Shown: positions 52,189 to 62,671, counted from the whole stretch's first letter. The stretch: 63,842 bases of DNA, filler included, from Octopus bimaculoides (GCF_001194135.2; 6 parts of 5 records of this genome joined end to end with filler, not necessarily neighbours in it), one strand, 5' to 3'. Translations and numbers: made by a program. The notes: generated by a model from the sequence alone, not told the origin.

Positions 52189-52502
52189 CTGGAAAAGGAA
52201 ACAAAGACAGTTAAANNNNNNNNNNNNNNNNNNNNNNNNNNNNNNNNNNNNNNNNNNNNTTAATTAATTAANNNNNNNNNNNNNNNNNNNNNNNNNNNNN
52301 NNNNNNNNNNNNNNNTCACAACGGTATTCTCTGGGGTCGACCAAATTCTACTTACAAAACTTTGCTCGACTCTAAGCTATAATAAAAGTCACTTTCCCAT
52401 ATTGGCGCGAAATGGGACCGAACCACGTAGTTATGAAACCTCACCACACAGCCATGTCAATTCCCAGAAGCGTACTTCTTTGATCAATACAATTCAATGA
52501 AA

Positions 52503-52718
52503 GGCGGCGAGCTGGCAGAAGCGTTAGCACACCGGGCGAAATGCTTAGTGGTATGTCGCCTGTCTTTACGTTCTGAGTTCAAATTCCGCTGAGGTCGACT
52601 TTGCTTTTCATCCTTTCGGAGTCGATAAATTAAATACCAGTTGCATACTGGGGATCGATCTAATCGATTGGTCCCCTCCCCAAAAATTTCGAGCCTTGTG
52701 CTTAGAGTAGGAAATAAT
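52503..52718 (+). mobile_element. SINE family A, near full length
   Basis: GGCGGCGAGCTGGCAGAAGCGTTAGC..GAGTTCAAATTCCG..GTCGACTTTGC..GTCGATAAATTAA..GCCTTGTGC. Confidence 0.9.
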
Positions 52719-53298
52719 AAACGCTATTACAAGTAACTTCACCTACTGAAAATTTTCGGTTCAAACCAAATGGAAGATTCGAGTTTTATTCTCTAATTAT
52801 TAATTCGTTCTTTTATGTCAAGGTAAGGAATTAATATTTATTCCGTTGTTTGAATGTTCCTTAAGTATAACATGCTCTCAGAGAAATAAGCTCACGCGAA
52901 TCAATTTTAAATTCCAAGATGGAGGAAATTTCGTTTGATTTGCGACGCTGTTATCTGTGAAAAAAAAATGCATCGGTCTCATTCACGTTTCCCAGCTTTT
53001 GTTTTATCTACTAGTTTTATGTATTGTTTTATCTACTATTGTTATGTATAACACCTATGTACATGGACAAAGGATAGCATTGTTTATTTAACACCGTTGG
53101 CGCTTTGTTTCGGCGGGAAAAACTTCAGCGAATCAGAGGTCCGGTATCAATTTCCTATTGTTACTTTGTTTGTGTGTTTGTAGGTAGAGGTTGATAGAAA
53201 ATATATGACACGCACACACATTCATATGTACGTATACAAACACAAACATATATATAATTGATACACATATACGTACACGTGCGCACACACACACACAC

Positions 53299-53373
<75 letters not shown>

Positions 53374-53389
53374 TAGTATATATTATATT

Positions 53390-53580
53390 CTTTTTGACTT
53401 GTTTCAGTCAATTTTGACAGTGGCCATGCTGGAGCACTGCCTTTTCAGTCGAAGAAATCGACCCCAGAACTTATTCCTTGTAAGCTTATTCCATCGGTCA
53501 CTTTTGCCGAACCTCTATGTTACGGGAACCTAAGCACACCAACATCAGTCATCAAGCGATGGTGGGGGGACAGGGGTGGA
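53390..53580 (-). mobile_element. SINE family B, 3' half
   Basis: TTGTTTCAGTCA..GGCCATGCTGGAGCAC..AAATCGACCCCAG..CACACCAACATC. Confidence 0.85.
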
Positions 53581-53875
53581 ACAAACGCTGGAGCATTGCC
53601 CAAAATTTTAATCTGCTAAGAATTTAAATTAAAAAATTGTTTAAATAACTTGTTAAAAACATTGACCTTACTATAGTTTTGACCTTACTAAAATGATGAT
53701 CCGGCCAAACTGTTGACCCTGCTAAGAATCTTTCATCTTGTTAAAATCTTTTGCCCGTCTAAAAACTTTATTCTTGCCAAAAATGTTGATCTTCCGAAAA
53801 GCTTTCGCCTCGTTATGATGTTTGCAAAACCCATGCCCTTTTCCGTTACCTTAATTCACCTCATTTCTGCTTCAG

Positions 53876-54098
53876 TTACCATCGAGAGTTACAGTGGTCG
53901 TACTACAATAACTGACCTATTAGCCACGACTGAGAATGACCAGCCAAAATGTGGCCACGGGAAGTTCTCTGTCCGACCTGGTGGCTATTTGTACCAACCT
54001 GGCCGTTGTCCGAGTGTAGTCAGCTTCGGAAGTAAGAAATCACTTCGCAAAGTACAGTTCCAATGGACGCCACCTCGATGTGCCTGTGCAACCATCAG
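53876..54098 (+). CDS. Reeler/ECM1-like gene, exon a (Reeler domain): (V)TIESYSGRTTITDLLATTENDQPKCGHGKFSVRPGGYLYQPGRCPSVVSFGSKKSLRKVQFQWTPPRCACATI
   Basis: Acceptor tttctgcttcag, donor CAG|gtgaga, phase 1 to 2, only one open frame. CP.VV......VQFQWTPP...C resembles the Reeler motif C..AVT......V.F.W.AP...C. Confidence 0.8.
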
Positions 54099-54159
54099 GT
54101 GAGATATTATAATTGATATTGCTGCTGCTGTTGTTCCTCTTGCTGTTATTGTTGTTGTT

Positions 54160-54337
54160 CTATATTTTAGAGATGAGGAATTCGTACATTATTTACATTA
54201 TTTACATTGTCCGCATCTTGTTTGTTGTTATCACAACGTTTCGGCTGATTTACTCTCCAGCCTTCATCAGGTGTCCTGGTGGAATTTTGAACCCAACCCT
54301 GGGTTCTCATTCCTAAGTTATTTTTTGCTGATGTTAC

Positions 54338-54368
<31 letters not shown>

Positions 54369-54455
54369 TTCATTTATTCAAGGCACTGCCTGGAATTGAA
54401 CACGCAATCTTGGGCTTAGTAGCCCGTGCTCTTAACCATTACGCTATATGCCCGT
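54160..54455 (-). mobile_element. Composite non-autonomous element: tRNA-derived head (54453-54381), (TAA)n, hammerhead-bearing body
   Basis: Minus strand: GGGCATATAGCGTAATGG (A box), GGGCT-ACTA-AGCCC anticodon-like hairpin, GTTCAATTCC (B box), TAA tract, then the CTGATGA..GAAAC motif. Confidence 0.7.
54230..54275 (-). ncRNA. Minimal type I hammerhead ribozyme motif (Penelope-type)
   Basis: GACAC-CTGATGA-A-GGCTG(GAGAGTAAAT)CAGCC-GAAA-CGTT-GTGAT: intact core, 5-bp stem II, palindromic ACGT in place of stem III, stem I with one mismatch. Confidence 0.7.
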
Positions 54456-54639
54456 GGGCTAAAAAAAAAGTTGTTGTTGTTGTTGTTGGTTAGTTCCTTG
54501 TCAGTTTTGACAGAACAGACGTTTGATTGAAGACAACCTAGCAATGACCGTACAGTAGACTTGTGCCTGGGAGGGTAACTTTCTAGGTATAATCCCATGG
54601 TCATTCATGACCGAACGAAGGGGGACTCCTCACTTGTAA

Positions 54640-54671
<32 letters not shown>

Positions 54672-55123
54672 AATAATACACGAAATGAGGAAATCATGAG
54701 GAAACAATGCAGAGACGAATGCTGAAGAACCTTTATCTCTGCATTGCTAGAAATTTCCCTTTTCATTGATTATTCTACTGTATCCTGTATCNNNNNNNNN
54801 NNNNNNNNNNNNNNNNNNNNNNNNNNNNNNNNNNNNNNNNNNNNNNNNNNNNNNNNNNNNNNNNNNNNNNNNNNNNNNNNNNNNNNNNNNNNNNNNNNNN
54901 NNNNNNNNNNNNNNNNNNNNNNNNNNNNNNNNNNNNNNNNNNNNNNNNNNNNNNNNNNNNNNNNNNNNNNNNNNNNNNNNNNNNNNNNNNNNNNNNNNNN
55001 NNNNNNNNNNNNNNNNNNNNNNNNNNNNNNNNNNNNNNNNNNNNNNNNNNNNNNNNNNNNNNNNNNNNNNNNNNNNNNNNNNNNNNNNNNNNNNNNNNNN
55101 NNNNNNNNNNNNNNNNNNNNNNN

Positions 55124-55347
55124 CCCTTTACAATATTTTTTGCTTATTTCTTTTTCTAAATAGAATATTTTTTTGCTTTTTTTTTGGTTTCCCGTTACAA
55201 TATTTTTTGCTTATTTTCTTTTTCTAAATAGAAGTTTTTTGCTTTGTTTTTTTTTTTTCTTGGTTTCCCTTTATAATATTTTTTGTTTATTTTCTTTTTC
55301 TAAATTGAATTTTTTTTGCATCATTTTTTGGCGGATTTCCCTTTCAG
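55124..55347. repeat. Three ~70-bp T-rich tandem units ending at a splice acceptor
   Basis: CAATATTTTTTGCTTATTT..TTTCTAAATAGAA..GGTTTCCC is repeated; the last unit ends GATTTCCCTTTCAG. Confidence 0.75.
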
Positions 55348-55430
55348 AATTACTGTAAAATCTATCCAAGGTTTCTACTACTCCGGTAATACCCCCGACG
55401 ATGCTCTCTATCGAAGTATATGTCCCAAAG
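55348..55430 (+). CDS. Reeler/ECM1-like gene, exon b (end of Reeler): (R)ITVKSIQGFYYSGNTPDDALYRSICPK
   Basis: Acceptor atttccctttcag, donor AAG|gtaacc, phase 2 to 1 matching exon a; the other two frames have stops. Confidence 0.8.
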
Positions 55431-55770
55431 GTAACCATTACAAAATTTGTTATTTATTCCTCAGCACTTCGTCCTTGGTAGATCGATAGAATAAAGTACC
55501 AATCAAGTACTTGGGGTAAAGCTATCGATTTCTGGTCTTCTCTCAAAATTACTAGTCACGTGACGAAATTAGAAACCATGATCTATTTATTTCATTCTCT
55601 TTTTAGCGTAGCTGTATATTCTTTGGAGATTCAAAACTCTGGTACTTTAAACCACTTTGAGTGGTTGAAATCGGTTACTTCATATATTCCTCATGCAACA
55701 TTATCTTAATTTCTTCTTACATAAAAAAACAAACAACCAAAGAATGTATATATTTACTATAAGTATACTA

Positions 55771-56109
55771 CGCATTTCGTCTGTCGTTACGTTCTGAGTT
55801 CAAATTCCGCCGAGGTCTACTTTGCCTTTCATCCTTTCGGAGTCGATAAATTAAGTACCAGTTGCGTACTGGAGTCGATCTAATCGACTGGCCCCCTCCT
55901 TACAAATTTCGGGCCTTGTGCCTAGAGTAGAAAAGAATTGCTTAGCAGCATTTCGTCAGTCTTTACGTCCCGAGTTCAAATTATGGCGAAGTTGACTAAG
56001 CCTTTTATCTTTTCATAAAATAAGTACCGGTCGAGCACTGGAGTCGATATAATCAACTTAACTTCTCCCAACAAATTTCAGACCTTATGCTTATTTGTAG
56101 AAAGAATTA

Positions 56110-56183
<74 letters not shown>
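55771..56183 (+). mobile_element. Two tandem 5'-truncated SINE family A copies with (ATT)n tail
   Basis: GTTCTGAGTTCAAATTCCGCCGAGG..; second copy from ~55940; ATT tract ~56107-56183. Confidence 0.85.
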
Positions 56184-56233
56184 TAGAAGCAGTTTCTATT
56201 TTAATTTCGCAAAATCTCTTCTTTCGATTTCAG

Positions 56234-56298
56234 ACATGACACTAAGAAAACCAGCCAAAATTCCAATGATGACTCTCGAGGAGGAAGTGACCAAAATG
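56234..56298 (+). CDS. Reeler/ECM1-like gene, exon c (linker): (D)MTLRKPAKIPMMTLEEEVTKM
   Basis: Acceptor cttctttcgatttcag, donor ATG|gtaaga, phase 1 to 0, bridging exons b and d. Confidence 0.78.
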
Positions 56299-56331
56299 GT
56301 AAGACATAATTTTGGTTTCCTCATGGTTAAA

Positions 56332-56373
<42 letters not shown>

Positions 56374-56542
56374 CTGGCGTTGATAACTGAGATAATAAGA
56401 TAGTAATGACCAACCAACTTAGTGAATATCTGGTACAAATTTTCCACTGGTAGGTACGTCTACTAAATTACGTATGTTTCTATTTGCATGGACATAAATG
56501 AATACATATATGATGCTTATCCATGTCCGTCTCTTTTTGCAG

Positions 56543-56728
56543 AAGCGGGAATCTCTCTCGCAGCTTTGCCATCATGTCGAAGAAGAAAGAACGAGCGATT
56601 CGTTTCCGGTGAATTTCTTGGAACCCCGCCAATTGAATGATCTCGAGAAATCCGACCCACGGTGGGATATTCTACAGTTGGCACTTGAACAGCGTAGAAT
56701 TGAAGTGCAAACGTGCTGTGGGATTACG
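56543..56728 (+). CDS. Reeler/ECM1-like gene, exon d: KRESLSQLCHHVEEERTSDSFPVNFLEPRQLNDLEKSDPRWDILQLALEQRRIEVQTCCGIT
   Basis: Acceptor tctctttttgcag, donor ACG|gtaaga, 186 nt, phase 0 to 0, GC above background. Confidence 0.85.
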
Positions 56729-56758
56729 GTAAGACACCTGTTCTATCCATTCTCTCTT

Positions 56759-56816
<58 letters not shown>

Positions 56817-57198
56817 NNNNNNNNNNNNNNNNNNNNNNNNNNNNNNNNNNNNNNNNNNNNNNNNNNNNNNNNNNNNNNNNNNNNNNNNNNNNNNNNNNNN
56901 NNNNNNNNNNNNNNNNNNNNNNNNNNNNNNNNNNNNNNNNNNNNNNNNNNNNNNNNNNNNNNNNNNNNNNNNNNNNNNNNNNNNNNNNNNNNNNNNNNNN
57001 NNNNNNNNNNNNNNNNNNNNNNNNNNNNNNNNNNNNNNNNNNNNNNNNNNNNNNNNNNNNNNNNNNNNNNNNNNNNNNNNNNNNNNNNNNNNNNNNNNNN
57101 NNNNNNNNNNNNNNNNNNNNNNNNNNNNNNNNNNNNNNNNNNNNNNNNNNNNNNNNNNNNNNNNNNNNNNNNNNNNNNNNNNNNNNNNNNNNNNNNNN

Positions 57199-57241
<43 letters not shown>

Positions 57242-57274
57242 AAAAAATATCTTTTTTACTAATGCCAATCACAG

Positions 57275-57422
57275 GACACTTTCAATCGTCAAGAATGTTT
57301 TGAGGATATCCGTAGAAACAGGATTGACCAGTTGTGTGGTGATGGGTACCCGGCCGTACCATACGCCAAACATCGTGAATCCTGGATGAGTACCCGACAA
57401 GAAACATGCTGCTATGAACTTG
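57275..57422 (+). CDS. Reeler/ECM1-like gene, exon e: DTFNRQECFEDIRRNRIDQLCGDGYPAVPYAKHRESWMSTRQETCCYEL
   Basis: Branch-like ACTAAT, acceptor caatcacag, donor TTG|gtaaga, phase 0 to 1; the only open frame. Confidence 0.85.
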
Positions 57423-58116
57423 GTAAGAAGCTACTTTTGAGGCTGTCAAGTATAGAACCTTAAAGAAAGTCTTTGAATATTGTTTCTGTTGTTGTTGAAG
57501 TTGTCGCTAAACCCCAGGTCAGCTCTAATTCAGAAAACTTTTGATCAAAAGACATTCCAGCCTTGGCCCTCCCGCCCTTTTGTATAGCAGGAACTATATA
57601 TTATCTAATAGATCCCATTTTATTTAAGACAGTAGAATGCGATTTGAGAAAGATTTAACTGTGACTTCGAAGGTTGAACAATCACAACCTTAGTAATATC
57701 ATAAGGCCCTCTCACACAAAAACTCAACATTACTGGTCAGCAGACCTAATCAGCAGTGATTGGGCAAATCGGGGCGAATGCAGTTTTGCACCTCTCCATG
57801 AAAAATGCATTATGGATTCCTACGTTTTAGATGTTGGAGATTACGAATATGCAAAAAGAAAATTTCATTTCACCCCGCCCTGCCTCTTCACCAGCCCCCC
57901 CCCCATTAATTTTTCAAAAATTTGTTTACTTTAAAGAGATCGTAGCGAATTGTCGAACACATGCAAATCGAAGTTATTGTTACAGTGAGTGCTCTGTGTA
58001 AACATGGGTATATCAATAGGTGTCATGAGAAAGCATAGGCGACGGGTGGAGTGTGGGGAGGGCAGTTTCAAATGATGGATGTTATCAGAAGATATAACTC
58101 AGAAATACATTTATAT

Positions 58117-58156
<40 letters not shown>

Positions 58157-58357
58157 ATACTCGTATGTTCATATGTGCATGCATATGTGTGTTACATACA
58201 TACAAACACACACACACACACACACATATATATATGTATATANNNNNNNNNNTATATATAAATACACACACACATACACACACAGATATATATATACATA
58301 TATTCACACACGCACTTATATACATACTACATACGCATATATATTTATACATACATG

Positions 58358-58395
<38 letters not shown>

Positions 58396-58431
58396 CATAT
58401 ATAATTTTGGTCTTGTATACGTTTCTTTTAG

Positions 58432-58565
58432 CTGAGAGCCGTTACGAATGCTTTGCCAAAAACTCCGCAGAACGAAGCTCTCACAGTCCAGATCACATCG
58501 CGTTTTTCGACGAAACCCATCCATTGGTTGATTTAGAATATTACCAAACAAACCCGCTGGCCAAT
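58432..58565 (+). CDS. Reeler/ECM1-like gene, exon f: (A)ESRYECFAKNSAERSSHSPDHIAFFDETHPLVDLEYYQTNPLAN
   Basis: Acceptor gtttcttttag, donor AAT|gtaagt, phase 1 to 0; completes CC-X9-C with exon e. Confidence 0.85.
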
Positions 58566-58785
58566 GTAAGTATTTGTTGATCGTGTTAACCACTAAGTCA
58601 TTTATGTTGATGCACGTGCATTTATGTTGATGTTGTTGTGTGTGCGCGTTTGAGTATGTATGTGCGGATGAAGAAAAAAGCGTTTTGTATGTAGGTGTGT
58701 GCATGTGTGATGGTGTATTACTGTGTGATTAAAAATTGATATATGCGTTTCTTCTTTTATGTATGTAAGCATGTAATATGTGCGC

Positions 58786-58832
<47 letters not shown>

Positions 58833-58927
58833 ACAGCAGCTAATAAGGCGAGTGCTTCTGTTTGTGTCCACAGACACACACGCACACACATACACATACA
58901 TGTATATATATAGACAGAGAAACATAC

Positions 58928-58970
<43 letters not shown>

Positions 58971-60174
58971 GAAGAGATTCCTTCAATGATGTTATTTTAA
59001 AGGCTTGACAATGTTCGTGTTTGAACATTTATTTATTAAGGATTTTTCTTAAGGGCAACATGAAAAAGAATCCTTAATAAATTAGATCAAAGACCGACAT
59101 AGTGGTGTCTTTATTGCAGCATATATATACCTAGATATATATTTGCAATGAGTAACTGAGCATTAAAAAATATTATTAGGTGTATATCTACAAAGATTTA
59201 GTTATTAGGGTCAGTCTACAGTTTCAATTATCGACCCTGTGGATTCAAGTTTTGTTATACATTTGAACTCATATACACAATTTCTCAGAATTACCTAGCT
59301 GTTCGACTGTGTCCATCGATCAAAGCTAAATGTAAAAATAAATTAGTAATTTAAAAAATCATGAAAATAATTATGCTGCTAATTGCTTAAAAGAAATGTA
59401 GTTGATAGTAGCTGCCAGCTTCGCAAATAAGTTTGGAAAGTGGATGTAGTTAACACAATAAAAAAAAATGTTGACTGGATCTCCGTCAATTTCGACGATG
59501 AATATTCTATAAATGACTGAGTATTCATCGAACACGTAATTAACGTAATTTTATCGCAGAATCAAACATATGACAAGACTGGTTATTACAATCATGAATA
59601 CATTCCATACAAAGGGCTTCCACGTAGTTTCCACTTAACTAATTTCGCTCAAATTACTTATGTCCTCCCGAGGCTCTAATAGAGATATCTACCCAAGATG
59701 TCATGCCGTAGGATCGAATCCGGAACCTCAAGATTGCGAATCGGGAGTCTTACCATTCACCCATACTACATTTCAGTCGACTGTATTCCTCCCACCACTA
59801 CCACCACCAAATCACGTGGCCATTGTGCATATCTTAGTAATCAATACTTACATCTAGCGATCAATACTAAATATCAATTTTAAATAATCGTTCATCCGCT
59901 AATTATAAACAATACGAAAACCATAATGCTAATCAATGGCAAACAATTTCAGACGGATTGTGGTGCCGTATTCTAGGGACATGCAACGTTTCATTATAGA
60001 AATTGAGAAATTGGTTTGCTTAATGTATTGGCAGCAAATATAAATTTTCTTTTAATTCTATTATGCAACAACACAATTTAGCAAAATATTACAAATTAAG
60101 AAATGAATCGATAATTGTATAATAAGATACATGTAAATTAAATTTTAATTGATTTTTGATTTTAGACTGCTTTA

Positions 60175-60380
60175 AGGCGGCGAGCTGGATGGACCGTTAG
60201 CACGTTGGATAAAATGCTTAATGTTGTTCTGAGTTCGAATTCCGGCGAGGTCGACTTTGCCCCTTTCGTGGTTGATAAAATAAGTACCTGTTTAGCACTG
60301 GTGGTGGAGGAGGGGATCTATGTAACTTACTAGGCACCGGCCCCTCTTCAAAATCTCAGCCCTTGTCCCTATAACAAAGG
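60175..60380 (+). mobile_element. Degenerate SINE family A copy
   Basis: AAGGCGGCGAGCTGG..GAGTTCGAATTCCGGCGAGGTCGACTTTGC. Confidence 0.8.
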
Positions 60381-60692
60381 ATTTTAGATTGTCTTATATT
60401 AAGAAAAAATAAGGATGTACTGGGTATTATGAGATACAACTTGAACCGATGTAAATTTGCTATCGACCACTGGAAGGCCACATATATCACGCTGTGGATT
60501 ATACAGTAATCTCTCGACCATCGTGGCTGATACGTTCTAAACTCCACGCCCCACCCCCGCGATAGGTGAAAATCCGTGAGGTAGAAACAATACTGTACTG
60601 TATATTTTTTTTAATTAAATTTTATACACACGGTGGTGCACCAGCATGACCGCAGCCACTTGGCTGAAACCCATAAATAAATAAATAAATAA

Positions 60693-60731
<39 letters not shown>

Positions 60732-60818
60732 AAATTTATAGAGAAACAAAAGACGATGACAAGTGTATGAACAATAAGCAAGTGTATTACTTCGAATGGT
60801 GGGGGAAAATGAAAAAGT

Positions 60819-60855
60819 CTTTTACGTTTCGAGCCTACGCTCTTCAACAGAAAAG
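60819..60855 (-). ncRNA. Degenerate minimal hammerhead motif (core CTGTTGA, probably inactive)
   Basis: TTTT-CTGTTGA-A-GAGC(GTAG)GCTC-GAAA-CGTA-AAAG. Confidence 0.45.
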
Positions 60856-61494
60856 AATACGAGAAAATAAACCAAAAGAAAATGAANNNNNNNNNNNNNN
60901 NNNNNNNNNNNNNNNNNNNNNNNNNNNNNNTTAATTAATTAANNNNNNNNNNNNNNNNNNNNNNNNNNNNNNNNNNNNNNNNNNNNCTGAGATGCTGGAT
61001 TATTCTAGAAGTGCAGAATTGTTATAAATACATAACTTGCAAAATATGGAACCGTACAGATTTTGATTGCGTTAGTGTGTGCATATGCGTATGCGAATGT
61101 ATGAGACGGTCGGCTTTGCTTCTGCATCCGTGCGTCTGTCTCAGGATGTGAGTGAGTGTGCGTGTGCGTGCGTGCGTGCGTGCGTGCGTGCATGTGCGTG
61201 TGCGTTTACGTGTATGTGTGTCTGTGTGTGGGCATGAGTGAGACAACAGTGGCTGCATCACGCTCACAAAATCTTATAAGCTGTAATGCAAATACATATA
61301 AGCGTGTATATGTATCTGTATGTGCGCATGTGTATAATACATACAATTATATACGCATACATTCACATTCACACACACACACACTCTCTCTCTCTCTCCC
61401 AAACACACACAGTCAAACAGATATACATGTATAGATATAATTATACATATACATATATACATATATAGATATTAGATATATGTATATGCGTATA

Positions 61495-62315: not shown

Positions 62316-62492
62316 TTGAGCTGAGAGAGATAGTAGTTCGTCTTGCCTTTATGCTGGCCGAAGGGAGAAAGGAAGAGGTGACCACAGGTCACGTGTGATC
62401 AACGAGGAGTGGTAGAGAGGGGAAAAGGGAGGAAGTTGAACAAAGGTAAGCGACGAGAGACAGGAGACGCACTACTATCTCTCTCAGCTCAA
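62316..62492. mobile_element. 177-bp MITE-like element with perfect 22-bp terminal inverted repeats
   Basis: TTGAGCTGAGAGAGATAGTAGT (62316-62337) / ACTACTATCTCTCTCAGCTCAA (62471-62492); no clear TSD. Confidence 0.65.
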
Positions 62493-62671
62493 GTTCGTCA
62501 CATTACAGCGTTCAGTATCTCCTCTCGTTCGGCTTAACGGCCTTTAACGTTGTTTTCACTGTTTAATTTTTNNNNNNNNNNNNNNNNNNNNNNNNNNNNN
62601 NNNNNNNNNNNNNNNTTAATTAATTAANNNNNNNNNNNNNNNNNNNNNNNNNNNNNNNNNNNNNNNNNNNN

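Follow-up and report, generated by a model that had tools for sequence, protein, structure and literature searches.

Endo16 is a classic endoderm marker gene of sea urchins that is rarely considered outside the echinoderms. As far as we are aware, albumins are mostly regarded as a superfamily that arose in vertebrates, with Endo16 as the one exception, and invertebrate relatives of the albumin/ECM1 fold are scarcely documented. According to PMC9856734, which cites Baker 2002 for it, an origin of Endo16 from an ancestral albumin gene has been proposed. ECM1, a secreted matrix protein with albumin-like double loops, carries the cysteine pattern of these loops, CC-(X7-10)-C, and in the albumin family, as surveyed for vertebrates only, the cysteines are nearly the sole conserved residues (PMC5480655). 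Here, we compare these systems with a locus of Octopus bimaculoides at positions 53876-58565 of a 63,842-nucleotide stretch of DNA (the window). Based on our data, this locus most probably comprises six internal coding exons of LOC106872865, the gene of a secreted mollusc protein that belongs to the Endo16 family; they encode part of a Reeler domain followed by a single albumin-like cysteine module.

The piece of the window that carries the exons (52316-60886) is identical to O. bimaculoides chromosome CM046619.1 (assembly GCA_001194135.2), in line with the initial annotation of the sequence, which had called this a probable cephalopod gene. All six exons are bordered by an AG acceptor and a GT donor:

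Exon 1, 53876-54098, plus strand, phase 1-2: middle of the Reeler domain, TIESYSG...CGHGKF...CPSVVSF...VQFQWTPPRCACATI (AG/GT borders, identity to the NCBI model, Reeler profile and fold).
Exon 2, 55348-55430, plus strand, phase 2-1: last Reeler strands, RITVKSIQGFYYSG...LYRSICPK (frame, Reeler profile, AlphaFold2 model).
Exon 3, 56234-56298, plus strand, phase 1-0: linker and start of the first long helix, DMTLRKPAKIPMMTLEEEVTKM (frame, AlphaFold2 model).
Exon 4, 56543-56728, plus strand, phase 0-0: first half of the albumin-like module with Cys1 (SQLC), helices and the first CC (QTCCGIT) (conserved module cysteines C23, C72 and C73).
Exon 5, 57275-57422, plus strand, phase 0-1: Cys4 (QECF), Cys5 (DQLC) and the second CC (ETCCYEL) (aligned with C448, C461 and C476/477 of human serum albumin, HSA).
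Exon 6, 58432-58565, plus strand, phase 1-0: Cys8 (RYECF) and a degenerate copy of an acidic motif, FFDETHPLVDLEYY (frame, cysteine conservation, mollusc motif).

Spliced together, the exons give a frame of 279 amino acids (aa) with 0 stops. The chained phases, the open frame of about 280 aa and the motif strings described beforehand are all present, with CC-X10-C-X12-C and CC-X9-C spaced exactly as given. The frame corresponds to residues 63-341 of the NCBI model of LOC106872865 at 100% identity, and it aligns with residues 79-357 of Octopus sinensis XP_036355983 at 94.3% identity with zero gaps.

The assignment to the Endo16 family is carried by an exhaustive HMMER search (single-sequence phmmer) of 1.84 billion representative sequences, which yielded 49 homologues, including 33 at E<=1e-10, a result far beyond what chance would give. 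In most of the 49, a single continuous match covers both the Reeler part and the module, as for Patella (E 9e-39, query 61-336). According to cluster look-ups of about 30 of the 49, which provided taxa and names, they include gastropods (Patella, Lottia, Haliotis, Nucella, Lymnaea, Plakobranchus), bivalves (Argopecten, Mizuhopecten, Crassostrea, Tegillarca, Solemya, Mactra, Dreissena, Potamilus), the chiton Liolophura, the annelid Capitella, Branchiostoma, Holothuria, Lytechinus pictus and the hemichordates Glandiceps and Saccoglossus. Their annotations read 'uncharacterized', 'hypothetical' or 'Reelin domain-containing', with the sole exception of Saccoglossus kowalevskii ALR88644, which its depositor named 'Endo16-like 235'. 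The octopus sequence alone finds this protein at E 1.7e-8 and that of L. pictus at E 8.7e-6. With a hidden Markov model (HMM) of the mollusc modules, the full-protein E-values become 4e-45 and 6e-25, respectively, and the HMM matches 3-8 tandem repeats of the module in each deuterostome, amphioxus or annelid protein (domain E 1e-6 to 1e-14).

A second line of evidence comes from published primers for quantitative PCR of Strongylocentrotus purpuratus Endo16, which encode the peptides AKLRKD and YAIVEG (PMC12673967). In the Lytechinus protein (LOC129283225, 2026 aa), the matching peptides TKLRKE and YVIVEG lie 48 residues apart in primer order (~160 bp), and because of this match we take it as the Endo16 orthologue. 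Compared with Endo16 (S. purpuratus NM_214519, the L. pictus protein and 'Endo16-like 235'), the mollusc proteins have in common the Reeler domain, helical CC...C...C...CC...C modules, acidic regions and a C-terminal CC-x2-G...C...C...F-x2-CC; from N- to C-terminus, the layout shared by molluscs and deuterostomes is signal peptide, Reeler domain, module(s), acidic stretches, C-terminal six-cysteine module and charged tail. They differ in that the deuterostome proteins of the Endo16 type have ~6-10 tandem modules in 1300-2000 aa (2026 aa in Lytechinus), whereas mollusc members have a single module followed by a D-E-x-D-P-x-N-D motif in 500-1050 aa. At the level of sequence, these comparisons establish homology of the octopus module to the 6-10 tandem modules in the Endo16-like proteins of hemichordates, echinoderms, amphioxus and annelid. 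The architecture of a Reeler domain joined to an albumin-like module, which had been put forward as undescribed in molluscs, is therefore present in the octopus gene but not new, since it is already that of Endo16 and its relatives. Likewise, the initial annotation had drawn attention to the cysteine pattern of Endo16 without assigning the gene to this family, a relation that our search now supplies.

A literature search returned no paper pairing Endo16 with 'reeler' and no mention of LOC106872865, LOC115231448, V4CG75 or 'Endo16-like'. A word-indexed homology search with the full-length alignment returned two octopus proteins only, because the low-complexity acidic and basic tails swamped the candidates; with a clean alignment of the module, nothing scored. 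In some sea slugs, the unit itself is multiplied: a Plakobranchus ocellatus protein of 1314 aa (P0023) comprises three modules and as many Reeler-like regions, and two further sea slug proteins (P0038 and P0025) also repeat the Reeler-plus-module unit. Deuterostome Endo16 has reached multiplicity in another way, by tandem arrays of the module alone.

The N-terminal part of the octopus frame, which had been likened to the Reeler domains of F-spondin and reelin, is confirmed as a true Reeler beta-sandwich domain. A profile of the mollusc family matches the F-spondin reeler structures 3COO, 2ZOT and 2ZOU in the PDB over the whole domain (E 2.5e-9), and 9 of 34 relatives pass the Pfam Reeler profile (PF02014; best E 4.8e-12). 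In the AlphaFold2 model of the 279-aa fragment (predicted local distance difference test score, pLDDT, 79.3), strands continue to fragment residue 98. Foldseek on this whole model, in which the Reeler part dominates, places F-spondin reeler chains as the top six PDB matches and as 9 of the top 12 (probability 1.0, E 7.9e-4, target-normalised template modelling (TM) score 0.5-0.54). By itself, the octopus protein reaches 15.3-15.8 bits against the Pfam profile, below the cut-off of 21, and the match spans only the C-terminal 60-65% of the profile (positions ~46-57 to 130); the window encodes about the last two-thirds of the domain and not the complete ~130 aa. Apart from the full-domain profile match and the fold, there are differences from F-spondin: identity is 13-16%, and the downstream partners in F-spondin are spondin and thrombospondin type 1 repeat (TSR) domains. 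A search of the PDB with the single octopus sequence gave only chance matches to xylosidases, and the full-length mollusc profile found the Reeler domain and low-complexity noise (nucleophosmin, MAK16) in the PDB, but no albumin.

The module that follows comprises ~120 aa, is all-helical and contains eight cysteines in the pattern C-x48-CC-x10-C-x12-C-x23-CC-x9-C. We aligned 46 modules: the octopus module itself, 22 more from molluscs and, as repeats of deuterostome, amphioxus and Capitella proteins, another 23. Of the eight cysteines, seven do not vary at all, and at least 90% of the modules have the remaining one. AlphaFold2 on this alignment gives a confident all-helical model (pLDDT 87, predicted TM score 0.82) in which C1 lies in the first helix; after a short second helix come a third that ends in CC, a long one containing C4 and C5, another that ends in CC and a last one with C8. 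Albumin subdomain A has the same order of helices and cysteines. Behind the module, nearly all mollusc members carry the acidic motif D-E-[ST]-D-P-x-N-D-[IL]-x-D-[YF]; it is degenerate in Octopus (DETHPLVDLEYY, exon 6, window 58495-58540) and does not occur in the deuterostome proteins.

In a search of the complete set of PDB sequences, the 46-module profile gives 41 matches at E<=10, without exception to serum albumins or alpha-fetoprotein. The lowest E-values are 6.5e-4 and 1e-3, the latter to HSA domain III, and the six module cysteines from the first CC on align with HSA C437/438, 448, 461, 476/477 and 487. When single modules are scanned against Pfam, 32 of the 46 match Serum_albumin (best 2.2e-4) and 28 match ECM1 (best 4.3e-4), weakly in both cases, while any other family is matched by at most four. 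The Glandiceps relative (P0036) passes the gathering score of Serum_albumin (40.4 versus 34.4 bits, E 3.2e-10), and the whole Saccoglossus protein matches this family at E 2.4e-7. In common with the serum albumin family (PF00273; ALB, AFP, AFM, GC), the octopus protein has the eight-cysteine double loop of subdomain A in an all-helical setting. It differs in having one subdomain-sized module, whereas albumin consists of three domains of two subdomains (A and B) each, in a longer loop between C5 and the second CC (23 versus 12-14 residues) and in the fusion to a Reeler domain. Taken together, remote homology of the module to the albumin/ECM1 double loop is well supported by sequence profiles and unconfirmed by fold comparison.

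Several observations weigh against placing the octopus gene in an albumin-like Endo16 family. The link to Endo16 runs through a depositor's name and the primer-peptide comparison, and molluscs have one module instead of the Endo16 tandem array, which leaves orthology between the mollusc genes and Endo16, as opposed to a shared architecture, unproven. The octopus module itself scores 10.6 bits against Serum_albumin (E 0.47, cut-off 34.4), and the octopus protein has no match to Pfam ECM1 (PF05782) at E<=10. An hhalign comparison of the module alignment with a single HSA sequence finds the same region, at E 0.0033 and 9.8% probability; this HSA sequence is consistent with the HSA fragments in the PDB profile matches. 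Foldseek on the module model finds nothing significant in the PDB, mainly rhodopsins and helical bundles, with human albumin at rank 16 (E 9.1, TMq 0.38), and the identity of the fold is thus unproven. Besides, what is said below on expression, secretion, calcium binding and disulfide pairing is inference.

Some of these points would be expected if the module shared ancestry with the Endo16 repeats and had no such relation to albumin or ECM1, the CC...C spacing being a convergence and the profile matches being driven mostly by cysteines. The module model is confident and still finds no albumin by Foldseek, the hhalign probability is low, all per-module Pfam E-values exceed 1e-4, and the near restriction of conservation to cysteines in the albumin family (PMC5480655) would favour such matches. 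Nevertheless, we regard convergence as rather unlikely, as it has to be set against a PDB search in which all 41 matches were albumins or alpha-fetoprotein, a full-length relative above the curated Serum_albumin threshold, two independent Pfam models matched by 60-70% of the modules where other families reach at most four modules, and a helix order around the cysteines that agrees with albumin. Of the albumin/ECM1-like fold that had been inferred, the remote homology by profiles and the all-helical model hold; Foldseek on the module gives no significant albumin match, and membership in ECM1 itself is not supported.

It is very unlikely that the gene is the mollusc orthologue of vertebrate ECM1. 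The proposal draws on the CC-X7-10-C spacing pointed out in the initial annotation, which octopus (CC-X10-C, CC-X9-C) and ECM1 have in common, and on the weak Pfam ECM1 matches in 28 of the 46 modules. ECM1, as far as we know, has neither a Reeler domain nor a C-terminal six-cysteine module, and its overall layout is different; beyond the missing ECM1 match of the octopus protein, the best whole-protein match among the relatives is E 0.63, and no vertebrate protein appeared among the about 30 of 49 HMMER homologues that were looked up. Membership in the ECM1 family proper is therefore not supported, and we return to the Endo16 family as the preferred placement of the gene.

Our data also allow insights into the gene beyond the six exons, where the NCBI model of LOC106872865 (365 aa) is wrong at both ends. 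In the numbering of the locus used here (L001; window coordinate = L001 coordinate + 2380), its first exon lies at L001 10001-10181, 41 kb upstream of the piece with many gaps in between, and encodes a sequence (MVCAELVQ...INP) unlike the N-terminus of O. sinensis or any other mollusc member. In O. sinensis, as in other molluscs, this region comprises a signal peptide together with the initial third of the Reeler domain. We found no exon for these parts in the assembled O. bimaculoides DNA; the true N-terminal exon presumably sits in an assembly gap, and the model probably carries a wrong first exon. The N-terminus of the O. vulgaris model is likewise unrelated.

At the other end, the last 24 residues of the NCBI model are an exon read in the wrong frame (L001 60074-60270 = window 62454-62650, outside the piece). 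In the correct frame, L001 60088-60270 encodes QDAGFCCTEGLRVGQ...CNIVRT...CSKAFLNCC, which is 93% identical to O. sinensis, and a further exon follows downstream at L001 61474-61836. For O. sinensis residues 359-437, the assembled DNA has no counterpart; the exon in question probably lies in a gap of 1176 N directly after the piece (L001 58507-59682), which would explain the frame error. The 3' truncation with frameshift and the probably wrong first exon would both be due to exons that fall into assembly gaps. As judged from the flanking genome and from the orthologue of O. sinensis, the full protein has, in addition to what the six exons encode, a signal peptide, the first third of the Reeler domain, a low-complexity stretch, the C-terminal six-cysteine module and a tail dense in acidic and basic charges, and the true protein is likely to have about 700 aa. 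In practical terms, this helps to correct the gene model of O. bimaculoides.

The C-terminal module, CC-x2-G...C...C...F-x2-CC, is found at L001 60088-60270 and at the C-termini of 26 relatives. Against Pfam ANATO (PF01821), the O. bimaculoides module reaches 19.2 bits (E 0.0024, cut-off 21.4), and 6 of the 27 C-terminal modules match this family. A profile of the module gives 11 weak matches in the PDB, 10 of which are C5a (E 0.7-10); all six cysteines align with those of C5a, in which the loops are shorter. These comparisons weakly suggest an anaphylatoxin-like module.

Three assembly gaps interrupt the introns between the six exons:

54792-55123, assembly gap in intron 1: hides no coding sequence (zero-gap O. 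sinensis alignment over the junction).
56817-57198, assembly gap in intron 4: hides no coding sequence ((TC)n on either side; zero-gap O. sinensis alignment).
58243-58252, gap of 10 N in intron 5: inside an AC/AT microsatellite (O. sinensis alignment).

Because the alignment to O. sinensis is gap-free and the frame is identical to the NCBI model, no coding exon has been lost in these gaps. That the open frame is an artefact, either of a pseudogene in decay or of scaffolds joined chimerically over N gaps, as the three gaps within the exon span and an NCBI model plainly wrong at both ends might suggest, is scarcely credible in the face of 279 codons over six exons without a stop, a frame 94% identical and gap-free with respect to O. 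sinensis, retention of every family-invariant cysteine and canonical splice sites throughout.

As to the non-coding sequence, microsatellites lie beside the gaps, with (TC)n at 56751-56816 and 57199-57239 and AC/AT repeats at 58117-58410, and are likely the cause of the assembly gaps. Exon 3 is flanked by (ATT)n and (TAA)n (56106-56183 and 56328-56373). A repeat resembling short interspersed nuclear elements (GGCGAGCTGG...GTTCAAATTCCGCCGAGGTCGACTTTGCC...) is present in four copies, 66-92% alike, in introns and flanks (52500-52720, 55774-55930, 55940-56093 and 60176-60360). Rfam and tRNA scans of the piece, this repeat included, gave no match, and the repeat belongs to the usual repeat content of octopus. 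Immediately before exon 2 (55124-55333), a T-rich unit measuring 67-76 nt occurs in three tandem copies, which extend into the polypyrimidine tract of this exon.

Regarding the biochemistry of the protein, the alignment with albumin suggests the disulfides C1-C3, C2-C4, C5-C7 and C6-C8, which would lock a six-helix bundle. Orthologues have a signal peptide and the parts of the protein seen contain no transmembrane segment, which argues for secretion; by homology to Endo16, the protein would be delivered to the extracellular matrix or an apical surface, probably in gut or endoderm. Calcium binding has been reported for Endo16, and by the same homology the acidic regions and the long acidic runs of the tail are predicted to do so here. 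Matrix partners or small ligands would be bound on surfaces of the Reeler domain and of the albumin-like module, similar to the albumin-like domain of ECM1.

What is new here is modest: the Endo16 family is present in molluscs and an annelid, and its mollusc form has a single module. With relatives in cephalopods, gastropods, bivalves, a chiton, an annelid and amphioxus, the family is bilaterian, and the one-module proteins of molluscs offer a simpler form in which to study it. In addition, the finding has implications for how far back the albumin/ECM1 fold originated. As a tentative scenario, which we consider possible but do not favour, the single-module mollusc proteins may preserve the ancestral double-loop unit, and the albumin superfamily may stem from a Reeler-linked extracellular protein of the bilaterian ancestor, with tandem expansion of the module in deuterostome Endo16 and a later loss of the Reeler domain in vertebrate albumin and ECM1. 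If true, the albumin superfamily would not be a vertebrate invention, and its origin would already lie in the bilaterian ancestor.

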